A program made the translations under genes and the position numbers. Of a stretch of 64,000 nucleotides of DNA, positions 37,582-60,041 are shown one piece after another (within the stretch, counting starts at the first letter, position 1; each line of letters begins with the position of its first letter). The stretch lies in the sequence record NC_061451.1. The stretch is one strand, 5' to 3'. Below the pieces are notes generated by a model, which was not told the DNA's origin, searched no databases, and worked only from the letters and a program-made list of their open reading frames with translations.

Positions 37582-37693
37582 GATTATCCTCGGCTGGGGC
37601 AATTGTTCGAATCGAGTAAAAATTAGCGACAAGGAGCTGTTTATTTCTGATCTTAGCGCAGGAAGACTTTACAAATTTTTGACTGAGAATGAC

Positions 37694-37721
37694 AAAAGGG
37701 CCACCCGAAGGCAGCCCTTTT
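37694..37721 (-). terminator. Intrinsic terminator with UUCG loop
   Basis: GGGCTGCC-TTCG-GGTGGCCC-TTTT. Confidence 0.85.
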
Positions 37722-37753
37722 GTTTTCGCATCTGTGTAGCTGACCGAAGTCAA

Positions 37754-46384: not shown

Positions 46385-47098
46385 TCAAACTCCCTGATTA
46401 GCAACGTAGGTGTCGGTGATGTTCGCAGTCTTCTCAACGTTACCGCGAATGTAACCTATCTCAAACACCTGCACATTATGTTTGACCACAGCTTCACCGT
46501 CAGTCTCACACGCACCGCTATGAATGTCCAAGAAAGCCTGACACAATCGGTCAGTAACAGGCTTAGCTAAGATCTTCATCAGCGTATGCTTCTGGACAGC
46601 AGTCATCTTGATCGGCAGTGCATCAATCTCACGCTCGATAGACTTGCGCCCGCCACCGTACACCCAACGACAAATAGTGTTAGTGATTGGCTTCTGGTGC
46701 GTCTTGCTCGGCAGCTTATAGATGAATGTCATCAGGCTATAGAACAAGCTGCCATCGACTGCGCGTTTCTTCAAGTCATCAAGATAAGCACCGACAGGTG
46801 ACAGCTTACCTTTCTGAGGAACTAATTGGTCGAGCTTGAGATCAACATCAAGCCCGTATCGGTTAAGCACCTCAGAGTGACCGAACACAAAGACGATGTG
46901 CTCTGGCAGATCACGAATCGCAATCGCGTTGCGACTGTAATCACGCGAGCCTACAATGAAAATGTATTTGCGGTATTTCTTCGCTGGATTTAAGAACCCA
47001 TTGGACGGCACAAAGGTGACGCGCTGTGCTTCACCTTTCTTTTTAAGCCACCCCATCACCTGCTCTGGGCTCTGTCGCGTTACTGCAATTACTGGCAT
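46385..47098 (-). CDS. Hypothetical protein
   Basis: 237 aa; coupled to the sbcC stop. Confidence 0.75.
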   Translation of the reverse strand: MPVIAVTRQSPEQVMGWLKKKGEAQRVTFVPSNGFLNPAKKYRKYIFIVGSRDYSRNAIAIRDLPEHIVFVFGHSEVLNRYGLDVDLKLDQLVPQKGKLSPVGAYLDDLKKRAVDGSLFYSLMTFIYKLPSKTHQKPITNTICRWVYGGGRKSIEREIDALPIKMTAVQKHTLMKILAKPVTDRLCQAFLDIHSGACETDGEAVVKHNVQVFEIGYIRGNVEKTANITDTYVANQGV

Positions 47099-49419
47099 CA
47101 GATCACCTTACGACTAAGAGACGACACACCAGACTTCTTAGTGACCGTCCACTGATTGTTAGAGAAGTGCTCAACATCGTTTGGAGTTATCCAGTAGATG
47201 TTAGGAATGATCTGCTTGAGAATCGGCAGGAAGTTGTTGACGATGTGACTGCTCACAGCAGGACTGCAACTGTTGTCCGGCTCATCAAGAACGATGAAGT
47301 TGGTGCGACGGTTAGCCGGAATGAACGGCATGATCGCTACAGCAAACAGCAATCTAAAACAGTTCGTCTCTGCACCACTCATGATACCAATGTCCGTAGT
47401 CTTCTTAGAGATCATACGAGTCACGGTAGCACCAACACCCTGCTTGGTCGTGAACAAATCAAAGTGCATCGGTTCAGGGAACACAAGCGAGGAGTATTCG
47501 TTCAGCTTCTTCTCAATCTGTTTCAAACGACCTTCGACGGCTTTCAGTTTCAGCGCGTTGTTCGAGTATGCTTTGTATAGCACCTCAAACACTTTGCGCT
47601 TATCGATCAGAGGCTGCAAGTCCGCGAGCTTGCCACGAAGTTCCTTGAGAGTCTCCTCGTAGTGCTCATGCTCTTGGATGCGCATCTTGATCTTCTGGGC
47701 CTTGTGCTCTTTCTTATCAATGTCGTCTGTCAGCTTCTCAACTTCCTGAGTAACCTTCTTGAACTCGGCATCAAGCAGATAGAAGTCGTTGGAAGGTTTG
47801 CCTACAGCTTTGAGCGCACCAAGCAATTCACGCAACGTCTCAAGGTCTTCGATGCGACCCTCAATGACTTTACGTTTCTTCTTCGGCTTCTCAATCTTCT
47901 TCGGCTTCTTCAATGAATCGAGGCGAGTGTTGAGCTTGTCATACTTCTTGGCAGACTCAAACTGCTCTTCCATTTTATCCAACAGCTTACCGACCTTCTT
48001 CATACGAGCTTGAAGTTCTTCACGGTCGAGCTTCGGCTTCTTGACCTTGTTGTCCTTGAGAGCCTGGAGTTCAGCAGACAACGCATAGTAGTCCAGAGCT
48101 TCGATGCAGTCATCAACAGTAGCCCGTGCACGGGTTGCCGCTTTAGCCATCGACTTCATATCAACATCCTGAGAACACGTAGGGCACTTTGTACCTTCAA
48201 CATGTTCGGACAGATGCTCAAATGCTTTTACGATTGCTCGCGCTTCTGCTCGCGCATCACGAGCTTCTTCCTCAGTTCGTTTAGGACTTTTGAGCTTAGA
48301 TAGCCGCTTTTCCAATTGTTTGACTGAGGACTGCCATGCTCGGTATTCTTCTTGCTGGCCATCAATCTCCTCCAGGAGCTGTTCGATTTCTTCCTCTTCG
48401 GCCACCAGCTTGCGATGCTTCTTGCTTGCGGCTTTGCTATCAAAGTCCGAGCAATCGCCGAGTTCTTCAAGTTGCTTGTGCAGCTTTTTCAGATCTGCCT
48501 TATACTCTTCCAGCAGTTCCTCATACTCGGCGTACATGTCGTGCAGTGCAAGGTCGGAGCGGAGTTTCTTTAGCTCCTGTTTGGGATCATCTGACTCAAT
48601 GCCAAGCGTGTCGAGTTGATGTTTAATCTTCTCATACTTCTTGGCAGTGTTACGTTCGGTACTTACTTCAACCAGACGCTCGGACAAGTTGTTACGCTTG
48701 GCCTTGAGCTTGTCGATCATGCTGATAATACTTTTCAGCGTGTTCTTTTCTTCTGCATGGATGTCCAGCGCGTTTTGTTTACGCTGCATAACGTCCAGCA
48801 TATCGGCCAGGCCTTTAGATTCTGTCTCGGCATCTTTTGCCAGATCAAGTTTCTTCTTGAGCGCTGCGCGAATGTTATCGAACACATCGAGGTTGAACAA
48901 GCTGGTCAGGTACTTGAGACGATCAGCAGGAGCAGCACGCTGGAACGGATGAGAGATCTGCGACTGGATGTAGCAGTAGCTGTAGAACTCATCTTTAGAC
49001 AGAGGCCAGTGCTTCTGTACCCAAGAGCGTGCAACGTCCTGACGACCAACCTTCTGGTCTTCGCCGTTGTAGAATACCTGATACTTGGTAGACGACTGCA
49101 CGACACGAACGATGCCACCAAGCGGTGACTTCCATGACAGGTCAATCGAGCTACCCTTGCCGAGCATGTTACCCTTGTCTTTCTTTTTCATCGCAAGGGG
49201 ATCAGCTTCATACAGCAAGGTAGGTATTGCAGCGAACAGCATACTCTTACCTACGCCGTTCGTGTTTTCCTTAACGTCTGGACTATCGAGGTTCTTCCCG
49301 CAGATTGTTGCGAAGCCCTCTTTGTCAAGGCCATCAATGTCGAGTTCCTTGTATACGCCAACGTCGCGCAAGTGAATCTCTTTCAGGCCAATACCGTGTT
49401 GCTGTTTTACTTTCGCCAT
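47098..49419 (-). CDS. sbcC: SbcC/Rad50-like ABC-ATPase with coiled coils and zinc hook
   Basis: NGVGKS Walker A, YIQSQ Q-loop, CPTC hook, MSGAE signature, IVLDEP Walker B. Confidence 0.9.
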   Translation of the reverse strand: MAKVKQQHGIGLKEIHLRDVGVYKELDIDGLDKEGFATICGKNLDSPDVKENTNGVGKSMLFAAIPTLLYEADPLAMKKKDKGNMLGKGSSIDLSWKSPLGGIVRVVQSSTKYQVFYNGEDQKVGRQDVARSWVQKHWPLSKDEFYSYCYIQSQISHPFQRAAPADRLKYLTSLFNLDVFDNIRAALKKKLDLAKDAETESKGLADMLDVMQRKQNALDIHAEEKNTLKSIISMIDKLKAKRNNLSERLVEVSTERNTAKKYEKIKHQLDTLGIESDDPKQELKKLRSDLALHDMYAEYEELLEEYKADLKKLHKQLEELGDCSDFDSKAASKKHRKLVAEEEEIEQLLEEIDGQQEEYRAWQSSVKQLEKRLSKLKSPKRTEEEARDARAEARAIVKAFEHLSEHVEGTKCPTCSQDVDMKSMAKAATRARATVDDCIEALDYYALSAELQALKDNKVKKPKLDREELQARMKKVGKLLDKMEEQFESAKKYDKLNTRLDSLKKPKKIEKPKKKRKVIEGRIEDLETLRELLGALKAVGKPSNDFYLLDAEFKKVTQEVEKLTDDIDKKEHKAQKIKMRIQEHEHYEETLKELRGKLADLQPLIDKRKVFEVLYKAYSNNALKLKAVEGRLKQIEKKLNEYSSLVFPEPMHFDLFTTKQGVGATVTRMISKKTTDIGIMSGAETNCFRLLFAVAIMPFIPANRRTNFIVLDEPDNSCSPAVSSHIVNNFLPILKQIIPNIYWITPNDVEHFSNNQWTVTKKSGVSSLSRKVI

Positions 49420-50969: not shown

Positions 50970-51058
50970 CTGAGTAATGTGCGCTATGCACTCGACGGTT
51001 AAGTCTCCTGCTATTGTTTTACCTCGTTGCAGTAAACGAGGAGATAAGGATCACCTCC

Positions 51059-51595
51059 TCAGACGGTACCTAATACTTCAAGCACATCTTCGTCGTCCAC
51101 ACTTGCAGACCACGAACGCATAACAGAAGCATTGCCTCGATTGCCTGTCAGCATTGATTTAACTGCTGGTGTGGCTTCGATTTCGGCATAGTGTTCCAAG
51201 AGAGCTTTGTCATCTTTGAACCACATAATGGAGTTACCATCCTTAGGGACGATCAAGAATTGGGTAGGCTTCTGGGTGACGTTTAACGTCAGGTAGTAAT
51301 CACCAGCACCTTTAGGAGTCAGCATCGGCATTGGCTTCATCGCATACATGAAGTCCTTAGCGTGCATGAGTTTCTGATCGCCGAGCAACCAGATTGCGCC
51401 TTCTTCGCCTTGACGCACAGCAGACAAATCGCCTTTACGTGTTGCAATCGTTCCGAATACATCTTTATCGAAACGTGACAGACCGAAGATCAGCGAGGCG
51501 AGACGCTTCAGGTCCGGGGTCGTGCATGGACTGTTGATCACAGCCATACCCTCAGACCCAAGTGTGAATTTAGAGAGTGAAATAAAGAGTTCCAT
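51059..51595 (-). CDS. Hypothetical protein with the shared N-terminal signal
   Basis: MELFISLSK at 51595 (alternative start 51607); ACTAATTT at 51630-51637. Confidence 0.7.
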   Translation of the reverse strand: MELFISLSKFTLGSEGMAVINSPCTTPDLKRLASLIFGLSRFDKDVFGTIATRKGDLSAVRQGEEGAIWLLGDQKLMHAKDFMYAMKPMPMLTPKGAGDYYLTLNVTQKPTQFLIVPKDGNSIMWFKDDKALLEHYAEIEATPAVKSMLTGNRGNASVMRSWSASVDDEDVLEVLGTV

Positions 51596-51660
51596 CGTAA
51601 CGTCCATACCGTCTTATGAATGTATGGTAAAATTAGTGTTCCTTAAGACATTTCTGAAAT

Positions 51661-51690
51661 AAAAAAGGGCGACCCTTAGGCCACCCTTTT
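51661..51690 (-). terminator. Hairpin terminator after dnaX
   Basis: AAAAGGGTGGCC-TAA-GGGTCGCCCTTTTTT. Confidence 0.75.
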
Positions 51691-51705
51691 GTTAGTTATT
51701 TACCA

Positions 51706-52989
51706 CTACTTCTTCTTCTTTTTCTTTTTCTTCTTGGGCTTTTCGTCTTCGTCGTCATCTTCGACTTCGTTACCCAATTTCACAGACAGTTTGCCTTCAT
51801 AAATGTCGGCCATCAGACTGAGGATAGTTGATTCCAACATAATGTCAGCAGGCACGGAGGTACTGTTGAATGCTACCTCTGCTTCTGCCAGTGCTTTCTG
51901 CAAATAGATCAGGCAAACAAGATTGACCTTAATCTTCTCTTGCTTAACCATATTCAGGAACATCTTGAGTCCAGCAGACTGCCACTTGTTTGTGTCAGAG
52001 TAATGACCAAGCGCACCGTGAAGTATCCAGCGTGCTTTCGCTACGATTGCTCGTGGGTTGTTTGCTTCACGCAGGAACTGAATGACGCCGATAAGGTCCA
52101 TCGCAATGAACGCACCGATAGTCTGAACTGCTTTGCCTTCCATTTCGATTTCAGGATCGGCCGCTGCAAGTTCTGCCACCAGCTTCTTATCAAACGCTTC
52201 ACCACCTTTAACTGACGCAAAGATGTTTTGCATCATCGTGATTGCGCCACGCATCTGACCACCAGCATACTCTGCTACTTGGTGCAGTGCGGATTCGGCT
52301 TTATCACGCGCTTTGTCTTTCTTCGGCATGATGCCAAGCGTGTCTGCAATCTCGGACAGTCGCTTCGCAATGATGTCGGTAGGAATCGGCCTGATAGGAA
52401 GTTGTGTCATACGACTGATCATCGTATCTTTCATCTTCTCAGGGTTCGTGGTCACAAAGATGAACACGACATGAGCTGGTGGTTCTTCAATGATCTTGAG
52501 GAACTTCGATTCGGCTGCGCTCGACATAAGGTGCGCTTCATCGAGAATGAACACACGGCGCTTGAACGTAGCCGCCAGTGGTGCTGAGTCAACGATACGC
52601 TGTGAGCCTTCAACTTTACCAGAGTCGCTACCCATATCGAACTCTTGCACGTCAGGGTGCTGGCCGTTATTGTACACCATGCGACACGAGGCACACTTAC
52701 CACACGCGCTAAACGAATCACAGTTGATGTACTTTGCGACGAGACGCGCAAACGTTGTTTTACCACTACCCAGATGGCCTGTAATGATCATCGTTGATGG
52801 AACTGTTTTCGACTTCTGCCAACCGTTCATGATCTTAACGATGTGGTCTTGACCTACATAGTCTTCGATGCGTTTCGGTCGAAACTGAGCGGCAAAGTTT
52901 ACCGTAGTCAGTTCAGTAGAAGATTCGGACTTGGAACTATCTGAACCAAAGTCGCGTTTCTTCTTCTTTTTCTTTTCTTCTTTCGCCAT
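51706..52989 (-). CDS. dnaX: Clamp loader, DNA polymerase III gamma/tau-like AAA+ subunit
   Basis: FRPK...VGQ, GHLGSGKTT, C..(C)GKC.SC zinc module, LDEAHLM, KIIEEPP, ISR arginine finger, G.MR sensor 2. Confidence 0.93.
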   Translation of the reverse strand: MAKEEKKKKKKRDFGSDSSKSESSTELTTVNFAAQFRPKRIEDYVGQDHIVKIMNGWQKSKTVPSTMIITGHLGSGKTTFARLVAKYINCDSFSACGKCASCRMVYNNGQHPDVQEFDMGSDSGKVEGSQRIVDSAPLAATFKRRVFILDEAHLMSSAAESKFLKIIEEPPAHVVFIFVTTNPEKMKDTMISRMTQLPIRPIPTDIIAKRLSEIADTLGIMPKKDKARDKAESALHQVAEYAGGQMRGAITMMQNIFASVKGGEAFDKKLVAELAAADPEIEMEGKAVQTIGAFIAMDLIGVIQFLREANNPRAIVAKARWILHGALGHYSDTNKWQSAGLKMFLNMVKQEKIKVNLVCLIYLQKALAEAEVAFNSTSVPADIMLESTILSLMADIYEGKLSVKLGNEVEDDDEDEKPKKKKKKKKK

Positions 52990-53026
52990 GATGCTATTGC
53001 CCTTTAGTTTGATGCTTACTGTCGAT

Positions 53027-53034
53027 ATTTACAG
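53027..53034 (-). promoter_or_regulatory. Putative middle promoter (CTGTAAAT)
   Basis: 38 nt upstream of the dnaX ATG. Confidence 0.55.
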
Positions 53035-53130
53035 ATTTTAGACAAAAAGAAAGGACCACATCCAAAATGGAGGGTCCTTAAAAAGTCTATCTCTGGTATG
53101 GGACAGCTATCACTAGTGGCAACAGGTGAT

Positions 53131-53340
53131 TCATGCAAAGCTCATCTCCCAGCGGGGCGTCACGCGGGAAAAGAGTTTAAATTCTTCAGGTGGGTTAGAC
53201 TTGATTTCGTTGATGGCTGCTTCAACGTCATCGTAATCGTGAAGTCCAGCTTGTACGGTCTGCGTAACGAACGTACCATCTGAATTGATCAAGTCAGCGA
53301 CGACTCGATAACTTGGGCGACTCTGTTGCATCCTAAACAT
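53131..53340 (-). CDS. Small hypothetical protein
   Basis: 69 aa; CAGGAG RBS; CTGTAAAC at 53381-53388. Confidence 0.7.
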   Translation of the reverse strand: MFRMQQSRPSYRVVADLINSDGTFVTQTVQAGLHDYDDVEAAINEIKSNPPEEFKLFSRVTPRWEMSFA

Positions 53341-53419
53341 AACATCTCCTGAATATTAAACCTCAACGTTCTTGAATTATGTTTACAGATTGCTTCGGTC
53401 CGTCCTTGCGATTTAAAGT

Positions 53420-53785
53420 CAGAATAGTCTTAAACTCCAATAAGCTCTTGTTAGAACGTATTGGAGTCCACCCTGTCAGATGACGGTCATTCAGGGCTTT
53501 CTCCCCGCACACTTATATAGCGCCGTGCGGCAGGCTGCGCTCGCGAGGTCTTATGTTTTCCACAGCAGGTGGTCCAGGAGGTAGCGTCCTCTGAAAAGAT
53601 ACCCGCCGCACAACAGCCTCGCTATCGGCCAATCAGCGATACGCGGTGTTACGCTGAATCGACCTAAGTGACTCTGGCCGAGTCGTGTACAAAAAAGAGT
53701 TCGGTCCCAATCAAAAAGATGGCGAAAAAGAAAGGGACCGAACAAAAGGCACTCAGCGCAAACTCCTTATGCACTGTTTTTGTAC
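53420..53785 (-). ncRNA. Candidate structured non-coding RNA (unknown family)
   Basis: No credible ORF; at least nine predicted helices; ACTAATTT motif at 53792-53799; ends in a 9-bp hairpin followed by TTT. Confidence 0.45.
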
Positions 53786-53825
53786 TTGGGAAAATTAGTG
53801 ACATTCCCTTTTATTCAGAAAATTC

Positions 53826-54404
53826 TTAGTCGATGGTTAATTGCATCTGACGCAGAGTTTTGAGAAAATGTCTGCGTTGGAAAGACTCGATACGGTACGG
53901 ATGATCGATATGTTTGTTCCAGCCCTGATTAAATAGCATAATGTTGTCGGGCAATTTCTCAGCACCATTCCACTTCGGTTTATCATCTACAAGCAGGTAA
54001 TTGCCTGCACCATGAACCGAATCAAGGAACGCAATTTTATCAGGGTAAATCAGTGGACTAATCACATGGAAGTGATCTATCACGTGGAGAAGTCCGCGCA
54101 TCGCTAGGCGCGAGTAACGAGTTCCAAGTTCGTGATAGCCACGATGAGTGCAAACACCAACAGAGTAACCTTGCTGCACAAGATACTCCAACGTGCCCTT
54201 TGCATACTGACGCATACGCGCATCGAGCATGAACGTCGGACTGTTCAGTATCTCACTGAAATGAATACCGCCATTCTCAGGCGTAATGTATTCACCTTCA
54301 CCGATAGTAACTCCTTTGGCAGCAAGTTTCTTACGCATCACAGGGTGAGTCTCAAAAAACGTATCATCCAAATCGAAAAAGATTTTCTTTAGCTTTTGCA
54401 TCAA
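53826..54404 (-). CDS. HAD-superfamily 5'(3')-deoxyribonucleotidase-like protein
   Basis: FFDLDDTF (DxDxT), CTHRG, K, LVDDKP. Confidence 0.8.
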   Translation of the reverse strand: MMQKLKKIFFDLDDTFFETHPVMRKKLAAKGVTIGEGEYITPENGGIHFSEILNSPTFMLDARMRQYAKGTLEYLVQQGYSVGVCTHRGYHELGTRYSRLAMRGLLHVIDHFHVISPLIYPDKIAFLDSVHGAGNYLLVDDKPKWNGAEKLPDNIMLFNQGWNKHIDHPYRIESFQRRHFLKTLRQMQLTID

Positions 54405-54736
54405 TGCCTCGTGCTGTTAAAGAGCATGGGAATATCGTTGATGTGTCCGAGATTGAGAAGTAGGTCTGTGTGTAGCAGGCGCATCTCATCCGCGTTGCAA
54501 ATGACAATGACTTCTTGCAGTGGGTCAATTAAGAATCGAGGCACCTCAAGCAATTCGACGGTCATACCGTCATCAAGCTCATCAACAAGGTGCGCACCCT
54601 CCATCCATGTTCTACCTTCAGCATCATCTTTCAAATGACCGATAAAGTATTCGTCATCCAGCGCTACCATCATTAGCGTCAGGTGATCAGTTTCTAGATC
54701 ATCAAATTCAAAATGAAAGTCATCGTCGTTGCACAT
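54401..54736 (-). CDS. Acidic hypothetical protein
   Basis: 111 aa, Asp/Glu-rich. Confidence 0.7.
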   Translation of the reverse strand: MCNDDDFHFEFDDLETDHLTLMMVALDDEYFIGHLKDDAEGRTWMEGAHLVDELDDGMTVELLEVPRFLIDPLQEVIVICNADEMRLLHTDLLLNLGHINDIPMLFNSTRH

Positions 54737-54738
54737 GG

Positions 54739-55329
54739 CTATGCCCTCAGGTCAACCAATATAGATCCGCTTAGGTCACGCAGCATCTCTCTACCAAGAG
54801 GCGTGTACATGATTTGATGCACAGCAATACGTTCGAGGAACTGCTTGCTGGAATGTACATCGTGTCCTGTACGCTTTCGAACAAACTCTATGATCGAGGG
54901 AGCAGGTTGAATGAGGAACGTCAGTATCTCCGCATCGTGGAGAACACTACCCATGTCAGTGATTGGCTTTAGCTCAGTCTCCTGATCAAGGATATATCGG
55001 ATAACGCGTTCCTCGTTACCAGTTTTAGGATTATGCTTAAAGAAGGTGCGAGCAGATTCAACCATAAGTTTGAAATCATACTCGTCATCCGCAGTAGGCA
55101 TTCTGAGAAAGAGAGCAGCAAGCAACAAATTTATTTCCACCTGCGGACCACGTTCAATGTTGAGCATCGCGTGTGCGGTGAGCACTACATCAAGCGCATA
55201 GTCACGGGTATACAGAGGATGAGAGGCTACTGTTCTGTCAAAATAGTCAAGGGCTGTGCGAAGTCCGTGACGAGATAACAGGTGCTCTGCCTTAACACGA
55301 GCTAGGCGTTGCACCCTAGTCTTCTCCAC
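54739..55329 (-). CDS. Possible inactive HD-domain protein
   Basis: PLYTRDYALDVV...LLLAALFLRM...LHDAEIL parallels PYHN..H..DV...LLAALFHD...DADL with the His/Asp ligands lost. Confidence 0.4.
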   Translation of the reverse strand: MEKTRVQRLARVKAEHLLSRHGLRTALDYFDRTVASHPLYTRDYALDVVLTAHAMLNIERGPQVEINLLLAALFLRMPTADDEYDFKLMVESARTFFKHNPKTGNEERVIRYILDQETELKPITDMGSVLHDAEILTFLIQPAPSIIEFVRKRTGHDVHSSKQFLERIAVHQIMYTPLGREMLRDLSGSILVDLRA

Positions 55330-56290
55330 CGATCTCTTTGAGGCTGTTCTTGATTGCTTTGCGCAGCGTCTTGCCTACGTCAATGCCATCAACATGTTTT
55401 GCGAACACATGCGCAAACAGCGTCGTCGGATTTTTCATGATTGCTTTATCGAGGTCAGGACGACCCTCAGCGATTTGCATTTCGCCAGGCCACAGTTCAG
55501 CAACGGCGGAGCTATCGTTAGCGGCGATAAGCTCAAGCTCGCGGACTGAAATCGAGTTCTGGCGAGCAATCGTTCGGAAGATGAGATCAACGAACGGCAG
55601 GAGATCTTCTGACACAACGTTCTTCACGTCTTTGGCATCGCCAGCACGTTGGAAGTCTTCCATGAGATCTGTCAGGACTTTCTTGTCGATCTTATGCACG
55701 TTGCGCAGTTTGTTGAACAACACCATCCAGCGAACTTTACGCTTGGAACTAATCAGGTGCGTCCACACACTTTCGCCGAGAGCAATCAGCAAACGATTGT
55801 ACACGTCAACTGAAACTGACTCACGGCTAACGAACACGGTCAGCTCATCATGCCACTCGTCTTTCTTAAACTTAGAACGGAACGAGTGTGTCTTGGAGCC
55901 TGACTGCTGGACAAAGTTGATGCGCTTGCAACGGCGCAGTGCTTCATGCAGCTTGTACTTCTCGATCACTTTCGGGAGTCGCTTCACTCCCTTACGACAC
56001 GCTTTGGCGCAATCGGTTTCACGACCGTAGAGCGCAAGAGAAGGAAGGCCAGACATTACAGCGAGGCTCGCGTAAGGTCGGACGGTAACTCCACAAACAG
56101 ACATGCCGGGTTCCGGGTCTTTGCCCAGTACGGCAAGAACATCGCCTGCTTTAGGACTGAACTTAATTGACTCTGGGTCAGGAGTACCGAGTGTTGCAGC
56201 CAGAAGGCCGACGGTCTTGCCTGTCGCCAGAACCAAATGATTTTTGTTGCCCTGCCTCACGACAAGGTAATCTTGCTCACTATGTTTCAT
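55316..56290 (-). CDS. Possible inactive zincin-like metallopeptidase-domain protein
   Basis: LLIALGESVW versus canonical LLHELGH.VW; NPTTLFAHVFA versus N..E.FAE.FA. Confidence 0.4.
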   Translation of the reverse strand: MKHSEQDYLVVRQGNKNHLVLATGKTVGLLAATLGTPDPESIKFSPKAGDVLAVLGKDPEPGMSVCGVTVRPYASLAVMSGLPSLALYGRETDCAKACRKGVKRLPKVIEKYKLHEALRRCKRINFVQQSGSKTHSFRSKFKKDEWHDELTVFVSRESVSVDVYNRLLIALGESVWTHLISSKRKVRWMVLFNKLRNVHKIDKKVLTDLMEDFQRAGDAKDVKNVVSEDLLPFVDLIFRTIARQNSISVRELELIAANDSSAVAELWPGEMQIAEGRPDLDKAIMKNPTTLFAHVFAKHVDGIDVGKTLRKAIKNSLKEIGGED

Positions 56291-59699: not shown

Positions 59700-60041
59700 C
59701 TTGGAACCTCAAAAAGCTCGTTCTCTTGGCTGATCTTTACAGAATCCTGCTTGTTCTACGTCAGAGACTCAAATTCTATCAGATAGTTGATTAGGTTAGG
59801 TAGATTAGGTATGGCATAGCATCTTATGCAGCATGAGCGCACTATATTCACACGGAATACAGCCTTCTCTCCCGAATCCCTAGCGCCTAGACGCATATCC
59901 CTCACCCATAGACATACCGTAGGGGTCGAAAACGCGAAAACCGCTTTAGCATGGTTATTTGGTGCCAATTCAGCGGAATTGATTTCTAAGCGCACTTTGA
60001 GACTATTCTTATTGCCGTAGGTCGATTCTGTAGGAAAGTGG

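Follow-up and report, generated by a model that had tools for sequence, protein, structure and literature searches.

A 485-nucleotide (nt) gap without an annotated gene in Erwinia phage pEa_SNUABM_7 (NC_061451.1; genus Snuvirus, a jumbo phage of 265.6 kilobases) appears to be a minus-strand gene for a structured non-coding RNA of a new family, with a core that acts as an RNA in its own right. We put the probability of this reading at about 0.55; that the minus strand encodes a conserved structured RNA at all is very probable. The gap is a single stretch at 53341-53825 of the 64,000-nt piece of DNA that was analysed (hereafter the window; adding 124000 to a window position gives the position in the record). 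It is flanked by the gene for a HAD-type phosphatase, gp213, on one side and on the other by gp212, a small gene that precedes the clamp loader. The minus strand, which we call the gene strand, carries every annotated gene of the window. The usual order in this genome is stop codon, terminator, promoter and next gene. In the 485-nt gap, the order is stop codon, a promoter candidate (P1), a leader hairpin, an intrinsic terminator (T1), the RNA core, a promoter-like motif (P2) and gp212.

Conservation of the gap and of its fold

A blastn search with the gap matched 37 Alexandravirus and Sasquatchvirus records at 68-73% identity over 77-99% of its length, and the matching region was annotated in none of them. 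The gene order was fixed in 19 other loci, where the clamp loader, the small gene, a gap of 465-487 nt and the HAD gene follow one another. Gap identity across Alexandravirus, Sasquatchvirus and Snuvirus was 69-81%. The corresponding values were 75-85% in the clamp loader, 62-89% in gp212 and 58-83% in the HAD gene; by these figures, the gap is conserved about as strongly as its coding neighbours.

Three more distant genomes were found by tblastn with gp212: Yoloswag, pEa_SNUABM_5 (Rivsvirus) and Yersinia phage fHe-Yen9-02. Yoloswag and pEa_SNUABM_5 have gaps of 540-570 nt after the HAD gene with a leader of the same design, and an nhmmer profile of the gap matched Yoloswag (E-value 2.5e-10) and Rivsvirus (1e-13) from the P3 loop to P6. 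A covariance model of P3 and P4 gave marginal E-values (0.05-0.07) on these two genomes and no match on the Yersinia phage. The downstream gene is a different one in Yoloswag and Rivsvirus, where a gene of 107-121 amino acids (aa) comes directly after the RNA. At the same position in fHe-Yen9-02 we found, in order, a GGAG-loop hairpin, a terminator, GCUACC, UAAG, a pseudoknot, GGGGAG, the ACUCCAAU/AUUGGAGU hairpin and CTGTAAA.

We also searched larger collections. The three-block pattern GGGGAG..ACTCCAAT..ATTGGAGT matched 16 places among the 2.9 million viral contigs of IMG/VR, none of which lies outside this phage group, and it also matched in fHe-Yen9-02; a looser first pattern had given many unrelated matches in IMG/VR and was discarded. 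Scans of metagenomes and bacterial genomes with two of the invariant loops returned this phage group and chance matches only. A gp212 protein search with context look-ups added five more contigs, with the gap at the same place and no gene called there. These contigs include two further lineages from Logan: L203, which shares 84% identity with Snuvirus, and L207, which shares 78% with Y3. The gap keeps its place in metagenome lineages as well. The RNA family is confined to Alexandravirus-like jumbo phages of Erwinia, Dickeya and, probably, Yersinia.

An initial annotation made from the letters of the window had described the region as a helix-dense non-coding RNA on the gene strand, and both the fold excess of the minus strand and the compensatory changes described below bear this out. 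The minus-strand RNA of the gap had a predicted folding energy of -170.1 kcal/mol, compared with -137 ± 6 in dinucleotide shuffles (z -5.4; 0 of 100 shuffles matched it), while the plus strand reached z -1.8. Among five lineages, the minus strand was 26-43 kcal/mol more stable, with z of -5.3 to -7.4 versus -1.6 to -4.3 for the plus strand. Such an excess is what G-U pairs, which work on one strand only, would produce.

Compensatory substitutions in homologous loci, which had been set beforehand as the decisive test, were abundant. Structure was counted on plain MAFFT alignments that were not fitted to the model, with slid partners and 500 shuffles as controls. The leader hairpin and T1 had 98.8% of cells paired (at most 44% with slid partners) and eight pairs with changes on both sides against 1.5 expected. 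P3, P4 and the pseudoknot stem S1 had 94.0% paired (at most 56% slid) and 16 such pairs against 7.8 expected, and P5 and P6 had 94.8% paired (at most 55% slid) and eight. None of the 500 shuffles reached the covariation score in any of the three sets. Because the lineages are related, the shuffle tests overstate significance; more weight falls on the controls with slid partners and on double changes that arose independently several times. The leader hairpin, T1, the helices Pa, Pb, P3, P4, P5 and P6, and an H-type pseudoknot are supported by compensatory changes in the aligned sequences, and the comparison showed the RNA fold on the gene strand to be under purifying selection in at least eight related phage lineages.

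No known RNA family was recognised at the locus, in agreement with the initial annotation. Rfam 15 (4227 models, including RNase P, transfer-messenger RNA (tmRNA), 6S, riboswitches, ribozymes, HEARO, GOLLD and ROOL) gave no hits in the window at gathering thresholds; in E-value mode, the window gave scattered hits with E-values of at least 0.13, none of them recurring. The homologous locus in seven other lineages gave no Rfam hit, and ARAGORN found no tRNA or tmRNA gene in the window. Our literature search found no paper describing this RNA. In a published catalogue that covers over 10,000 candidate viral RNA motifs (PMC10690425), the main text mentions neither Erwinia nor jumbo phages.

Architecture of the RNA

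The leader hairpin (53754-53776, minus strand, as for all elements of the RNA) has a stem of 7 base pairs (bp), CAGUGCA/UGCGCUG, and a 9-nt loop, UAAGGAGUU, with an invariant GGAGU. All of its cells (100%) were paired and three of the seven pairs had both-sided changes. The stem sequence is changed in Y3, L207, Yoloswag, Rivsvirus and the Yersinia phage, with the loop GGAGU retained. T1 (53691-53743) has 10-bp arms (53743-53734/53708-53699), extendable to 14 bp, followed by UCUUUUUU; 98% of its cells were paired, five pairs had both-sided changes, and the stem and U-run were found in every lineage, including Yoloswag, Rivsvirus and the Yersinia phage. A G+C-rich stem of 10-14 bp directly before a run of U6-U12 is the form expected of an intrinsic terminator, and we regard T1 as a putative one. 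Its U-run (53691-53698; columns 134-145 of alignment A1) varies from 6 to 12 residues among closely related phages, a variation that resembles slippage and might adjust how strongly T1 terminates. Immediately 5' of the leader hairpin, GUACAAAAA (53785-53777) could form a closing helix with the U-run and GUAC (53695-53687); both sides of this putative 5' closing helix are invariant.

The core (53684-53432, about 250-270 nt) comprises Pa, Pb, P3, the P4/S1 pseudoknot, P5 and P6. Pa (53670-53684) is a GACUC/GAGUC hairpin with GGCC in its loop; it forms in the minimum-free-energy structure of every lineage, and its sole covariation is GUCUC/GAGAC in L207. Pb (53627-53664) is a bulged 12-bp helix capping the invariant loop UAACACCGCGU (53651-53639), with one architecture and differing stem sequences in about ten lineages. 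L203, of the Snuvirus lineage, carries double changes in Pb from A-U to U-A and from G-C to A-U. Both helices were read sequence by sequence, since MAFFT shifts them between lineages. Insertions and deletions fall in loops or bulges, such as a 3-nt deletion in the Pb bulge of SNU1. The phage pEp_SNUABM_52 (L006) has a 10-nt tandem duplication of GUAACACCGC in the otherwise invariant Pb loop (A1 columns 186-195), a natural variant that doubles the conserved loop motif.

P3 (53543-53622) is a long helix in three parts (a, b and c) with an invariant GCUACC in its apical loop (53585-53580) and an internal bulge, AUAAGAC (53554-53548); its apex carries an additional inserted hairpin in pEa_SNUABM_7. 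Helices 1-3 of this region were 91-98% paired, and nine pairs had both-sided changes. L203 shows C-G to U-A in P3a and U-A to C-G in P3b.

The H-type pseudoknot (53503-53542) is formed by S1a (AGCGC, 53540-53536) pairing with S1b (GCGCU) in the P4 loop (loop GGCGC, 53524-53520). P4 itself (53534-53525 with 53512-53503) is followed by the A/U-rich third loop and then by the invariant GGGGAGAA. Four of the six P4 pairs had both-sided changes and S1 was 97% paired. The spacer between P3 and P4 changes yet stays palindromic (AGCGCU in Alexandravirus, AACGUU in Y3) because its pairing partner is the 5' portion of the loop of P4. The S1a:S1b pairings are GCGCU:GGUGC (or GGCGC) in Alexandravirus, ACGUU:GACGU in Y3 and L207, GGCGCC:GGCGCC in Rivsvirus, GGCGCG:CGCGCC in Yoloswag, AGCGC:GCGCU in the Yersinia phage and AGCGCU:AGCGCU in L203. 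Loops 1, 2 and 3, read from the sequences, are 0-6, 0-2 and 7-9 nt long, and loop 3 is A/U-rich. The order S1a-S2a-S1b-S2b, the short loops 1 and 2, the longer loop 3 and covariation in both stems are those of a classical H-type pseudoknot, and we class the element as one. RNAalifold gave a nested hairpin (ACCG/CGGU) for the P4 region that is broken in Y3, and it was rejected for the pseudoknot model. A nested alternative is possible in Yoloswag and Rivsvirus as well; the pseudoknot alone fits all lineages.

The 5' domain is larger in Yoloswag (about 1650-1735 of L197), Rivsvirus (about 1630-1715 of L198) and the Yersinia phage (about 2490-2540 of L199), with a possible second pseudoknot, CAUCGC..CUCUCAC..GCGAUG..GUGGGAG, that has compensatory changes in its second stem. 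Yoloswag and Rivsvirus also have a hairpin with the loop ACCGUCAU 5' of P3; in Alexandravirus, a loop like it is found at the tip of P5. For the Yoloswag and Rivsvirus copies, our model covers part of the 5' domain.

P5 (53470-53497) is a hairpin whose loop, GACCGUCAUC (53488-53479), is shared with Alexandravirus and Sasquatchvirus and differs in L203, Yoloswag, Rivsvirus and the Yersinia phage; five of its 12 pairs had both-sided changes. In L203 (about 1350-1385), the P5 stem is a perfect 10 bp with the loop UACCCCCUGCAU in place of GACCGUCAUC, so the GACCGUCAUC loop is not essential to the family. P6 (53432-53469) is a hairpin of about 17-20 bp with the lower stem ACUCCAAU/AUUGGAGU. It was 97% paired; its lower stem is invariant in sequence in all lineages and its upper stem covaries. 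A 3' tail (53414-53431; AAGA..UCUGACUUUA) is near-invariant in Alexandravirus, Sasquatchvirus and Snuvirus and is not retained in Yoloswag, Rivsvirus and the Yersinia phage.

Each of the 12 inverted-repeat pairs noted in the initial annotation is a perfect Watson-Crick complement, and five belong to the conserved fold: 53699-53708/53734-53743 (T1), 53434-53442/53459-53467 (P6), 53471-53475/53492-53496 (P5), 53505-53510/53525-53530 (P4) and 53670-53674/53680-53684 (Pa). The others do not. Two of them (53560-53563/53569-53572 and 53578-53581/53588-53591) sit inside an insertion found in Snuvirus only, and 53480-53484/53486-53490 would leave a 1-nt loop and is unable to form. The local pair 53619-53623/53635-53639 and the long-range pairs 53546-53550/53661-53665, 53532-53537/53614-53619 and 53525-53531/53605-53611 clash with covarying helices, and their complementarity is missing in other genera. 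The last of these had been suggested as a switch or pseudoknot; it occurs in Snuvirus only, and the conserved H-type pseudoknot is another one (53540-53536 with 53524-53520). Being confined to Snuvirus, the competing long-range pairs were dropped as conserved structure.

Transcription signals and neighbouring genes

Two promoter-like motif classes flank the RNA core. The initial annotation had pointed to a promoter-like motif just upstream on the gene strand, and such a motif, ACTAATTT, is present at 53799-53792. It overlaps P1 (53794-53822, minus strand), a sigma-70-like promoter candidate with the -35 element TTTTCT (53822-53817), a 17-bp spacer and the -10 element ACTAAT (53799-53794). The P1 block comes directly after the HAD stop codon and is near-invariant in 20 phages. 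Its Alexandravirus form, TTGTCT-17-TCTAAT, which is that of most genera, has nine of the 12 sigma-70 consensus positions, and the TTGTCT -35 element is also found in Sasquatchvirus. Transcription from P1 would start at about 53787-53785, at the foot of the first helix. In the window, CTAATTT has six copies on the gene strand (including 34003, 37620, 38486, 51630 and 53792) and none on the opposite strand. Five of the six copies lie in the 4.4% of the sequence that is non-coding, and the intergenic copies are 23-67 nt upstream of start codons.

P2, the promoter-like CTGTAAAcATAAT (53376-53388, minus strand), separates the RNA core from gp212, whose start codon is 42 nt further downstream. The aligned sequences show no variation in this motif, which stands directly after P6 in the Yersinia phage. 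CTGTAAA has 13 gene-strand copies in the window (22613, 39642, 49861, 53027, 53382, 59736 and others) versus one on the opposite strand, and CTGTAAAT has nine copies in the window, a count reached in 0 of 100 shuffles. Copies of CTGTAAA(T) are usually about 27-45 nt before start codons and just after terminators. The T4 late promoter is TATAAATA, which CTGTAAATA of this class resembles. Late expression of the RNA, as proposed in the initial annotation, found no support; the P1 motif looks sigma-70-like rather than like the TGTAAAT class. Taken as a whole, the two classes are concentrated in intergenic gaps, usually about 25-45 nt ahead of start codons, and may together define the transcription programme of the phage group.

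The gap differs in length from the other intergenic gaps in the window (485 nt versus 35-170 nt). There are two further unusually long non-coding gaps, at 59700-60041 (342 nt) and 37582-37753 (172 nt); the latter holds a terminator, a TTTGTAAAG motif and a CTAATTT motif. After gp212 come a terminator (T2) and the clamp-loader gene. The stretch at 53000-53080, with the terminator after gp212 and the CTGTAAAT before the clamp loader, is 87-98% identical across Alexandravirus, Dickeya phage AD1 and Snuvirus, and is conserved far beyond its surrounding genes.

The product of gp212 (53131-53340, minus strand) has 69 aa. Its homologues have 65-70 aa, are always encoded a short distance downstream of the RNA, and were confined in homology searches to the phage group of the RNA. 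Searches of Pfam, PHROG and NCBIfam with gp212 gave no matches. An AlphaFold model (pLDDT, the model's own confidence score, 87), built from an alignment that omitted the Yersinia phage row, predicted a beta-beta-alpha-alpha-beta fold, and a fold search of the PDB with this model found no significant match. Yoloswag encodes an unannotated gp212 homologue at 170125-170331 (2501-2707 of L197; 45% identity, E-value 4e-11). On the other side of the gap, gp213 (53826-54401) matches phrog_415, 'polynucleotide kinase' (E-value 8e-9), and weakly NT5C. The neighbours include a Rad50/SbcC-like ATPase, an Alt-like ADP-ribosylase, the clamp loader and the HAD phosphatase, and these identities place the gap in a T4-like replication and recombination module. 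The first of these neighbours, gp205 (47098-49419, 773 aa, annotated as hypothetical), resembles Rad50/SbcC/SMC-type ATPase models (E-value 4e-18, under the curated cut-offs) and is likely the analogue of T4 gp46.

Proposed role, alternatives and significance

We propose that transcription would start at P1, near 53787, and that most polymerases would stop at T1, leaving a short leader transcript (about 97 nt). Polymerases that pass T1 would make an RNA of about 355-375 nt reaching to P6 and the tail, in which the 5' GUACAAAA would pair with the T1 U-tract and GUAC, and the GGAG-loop hairpin may set the extent of read-through. The core may then act as a protein-binding or ribonucleoprotein (RNP) scaffold, or as a decoy. 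The co-conserved small protein gp212 is a candidate partner because it is always near the RNA and is limited to the same phages. A stand-alone RNA acting in trans has, in our estimate, slightly less than an even chance, and the specific route through attenuator read-through is put forward more tentatively.

Several observations favour a core that acts as its own RNA over a leader of gp212: P2, standing between the core and gp212, would supply that gene with a standard promoter; Yoloswag and Rivsvirus have another gene after the RNA; and the core shows no pairing to the ribosome site. Its size, pseudoknot and invariant loops also resemble protein- or ligand-binding RNAs more than phage operators, and the invariant P6 stem and three invariant loops point to specific recognition.

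Other findings weigh against this proposal. We infer from the DNA where transcription starts, where the RNA ends and that the core is transcribed. P1 in pEa_SNUABM_7 has seven of the 12 sigma-70 consensus positions and was not called by a generic promoter scan, and no convincing promoter was found between T1 and Pa. Since T1 lies upstream of the core, the core would be made only if T1 leaks or is overridden, or if there is an unrecognised promoter. There is no terminator between P6 and gp212, so the read-through RNA would run into the gp212 messenger RNA (mRNA) unless it is processed, which fits a leader as well; its first stop is the terminator after gp212. The predicted fold of gp212 gives no hint of RNA binding. 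For fHe-Yen9-02, nhmmer found no significant match and neither strand folds better; its copy of the RNA is probable on the basis of motifs, synteny and hand-read pairings.

The main rival, which we consider unlikely, is a long cis-acting leader. Early transcripts from P1 or from read-through of the HAD operon would carry the fold as a structured 5' untranslated region, either of gp212 or, in Yoloswag and Rivsvirus, of the 107-121-aa gene. Translation, processing or stability would be under the control of the fold, which transcripts made later from P2 would lack. The read-through RNA would be continuous with the mRNA up to T2, the element is flanked by two promoter classes, and an H-type pseudoknot within a replication-gene cluster recalls T4, which uses dual-promoter control for genes e, soc and 49 and a pseudoknot operator for gene 32. 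P6 also has an anti-Shine-Dalgarno-like CUCC, and the leader and J4/5 have Shine-Dalgarno-like GGAG. However, the sole predicted pairing with the gp212 ribosome site comes from upstream of P1, with 4 bp conserved, and the RNA is kept while the immediately downstream gene differs between genera. At about 250 nt, with eight helices and invariant loops, it is far larger than known phage translational operators. Assignment as a riboswitch was not supported: the only terminator precedes the core, the core is followed by a promoter-like motif instead of an expression platform, and there is no conserved pairing to the gp212 ribosome site.

It is improbable that the gap is mere punctuation between two operons, that is, a terminator together with processing sites for RNase III or RNase E or stabiliser hairpins. 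T1 does have the shape of a genuine terminator, P5 and P6 are regular hairpins as long as RNase III substrates, and the order of terminator and then promoter recurs in other gaps of the window. Those gaps are far shorter, though, and punctuation has no need for a pseudoknot, a multi-part P3 or loops (UAACACCGCGU, GCUACC and GGGGAG) that are invariant in several genera; the P6 stem is invariant in sequence beyond what pairing asks for.

A replication origin, an origin-primer transcript (as in ColE1 RNA II or T4 oriF and oriG) or a packaging signal, which the initial annotation had offered as alternatives, is very improbable. The location in a replication and recombination module and a promoter leading into structured RNA would suit an origin. 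There is no AT-rich unwinding tract, however, and the core is locally the most G+C-rich sequence (0.51-0.57). We found no iterons or repeats beyond chance (GTAA[CG]ACCGCG and GACCGTCATC are not meaningfully repeated in the window), no switch of gene strand in the window and no skew turn within the profiled 51000-56000. The many G-U pairs serve one strand only, and no terminase gene is nearby.

A hidden small protein gene is more improbable again. Open reading frames (ORFs) are annotated on top of the RNA homologue in three genomes: Yoloswag gp204 (54 aa; 1717-1881 of L197), SNUABM_5 gp214 (1708-1833 of L198, on the opposite strand) and fHe-Yen9-02 106c (68 aa; 2529-2735 of L199). Against a gene, the longest ORFs of different lineages fall on different strands, in different frames and at different positions, and SNU2 has none of more than 41 aa. 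Small indels (1-5 nt) are scattered over the whole region, the substitutions compensate for one another in base pairing, and independent gene callers predict nothing in the gap of the five additional contigs. The three annotated ORFs are probably spurious calls. The suggestion that a TnpB- or IscB-like nuclease uses this RNA as its guide or partner, for which the size of the RNA alone speaks, is effectively refuted: more than ten flanking proteins gave no match to TnpB, IscB, IS605 or transposase models in Pfam and NCBIfam, a PDB sequence search with two of them (gp216 and gp219) was also empty, there is no Rfam omega-RNA or HEARO match and no insertion-sequence ends, and the locus is syntenic and vertically inherited in all lineages.

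The nearest known examples to the proposed RNA are GOLLD and ROOL, large phage-associated structured RNAs with Rfam families that are the subject of a cryo-electron microscopy preprint (10.1101/2024.12.08.627333). Like them, it is phage-carried and non-coding, with many helices, a pseudoknot and strongly conserved loops. It differs in having no sequence or structure match to them, in a core of about 250-270 nt rather than about 580-800 nt, in its occurrence in jumbo phages of Enterobacterales and not beside tRNA genes, and in its own leader hairpin and terminator. The T4 gene 32 pseudoknot operator and other T4 operators share the H-type pseudoknot, the untranslated RNA and the T4-like replication gene cluster; the T4 operator, however, is about 30 nt and directly precedes an unstructured leader and ribosome site, while the pseudoknot described here forms a single domain of a much larger fold, with a promoter-like motif ahead of the next gene.

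Lambda nut and HK022 put are promoter-proximal antitermination or attenuation RNAs. They share with our locus the predicted order of promoter, conserved hairpin, intrinsic terminator and a sequence needing read-through, but there is no similarity to boxA/boxB or put here, and there is one hairpin instead of two. The omega-RNAs of TnpB and IscB are likewise structured RNAs of a few hundred nucleotides, but they overlap or abut a nuclease gene, and the RNA here has neither a nuclease gene nor transposon ends. The leader loop fits A(N)GGA in a hairpin loop, as in CsrB/RsmB of Erwinia and relatives. A CsrB/RsmB-like sponge was rejected: GGA occurs 5-12 times per RNA against 7-8 expected from shuffles and is not enriched, and there is no Rfam CsrB or Rsm match. 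The RNA is therefore of a known kind, the large conserved phage RNA, in a family that has no detectable relation to GOLLD, ROOL or Rfam and is distinct in both architecture and host range.

Few large structured RNAs combine pseudoknots with invariant loops, and such RNAs have repeatedly proved to be ribozymes, riboswitches or RNP cores. A bolder possibility, which we think quite unlikely, is that the core represents a new functional class of RNA, either a ribozyme (for example, one that cuts itself free from the transcript reading through T1) or the RNA component of a phage RNP whose protein would be gp212 or some other protein of phage or host, serving replication and recombination or counter-defence. 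The GGAG-loop leader and terminator would then be a new factor-controlled attenuator that gates its synthesis.

The analysis adds a well-supported new RNA family, for which at least eight lineages provide natural variants. The phages that carry it are cultivable and have tractable hosts (Erwinia amylovora and Dickeya solani), which makes its expression, partners and phenotype directly testable. The family also corrects annotation in three deposited genomes, where the RNA lies beneath ORFs that are probably spurious. The RNA and the two promoter-like motif classes together provide a first sketch of the transcription signals of this phage group.

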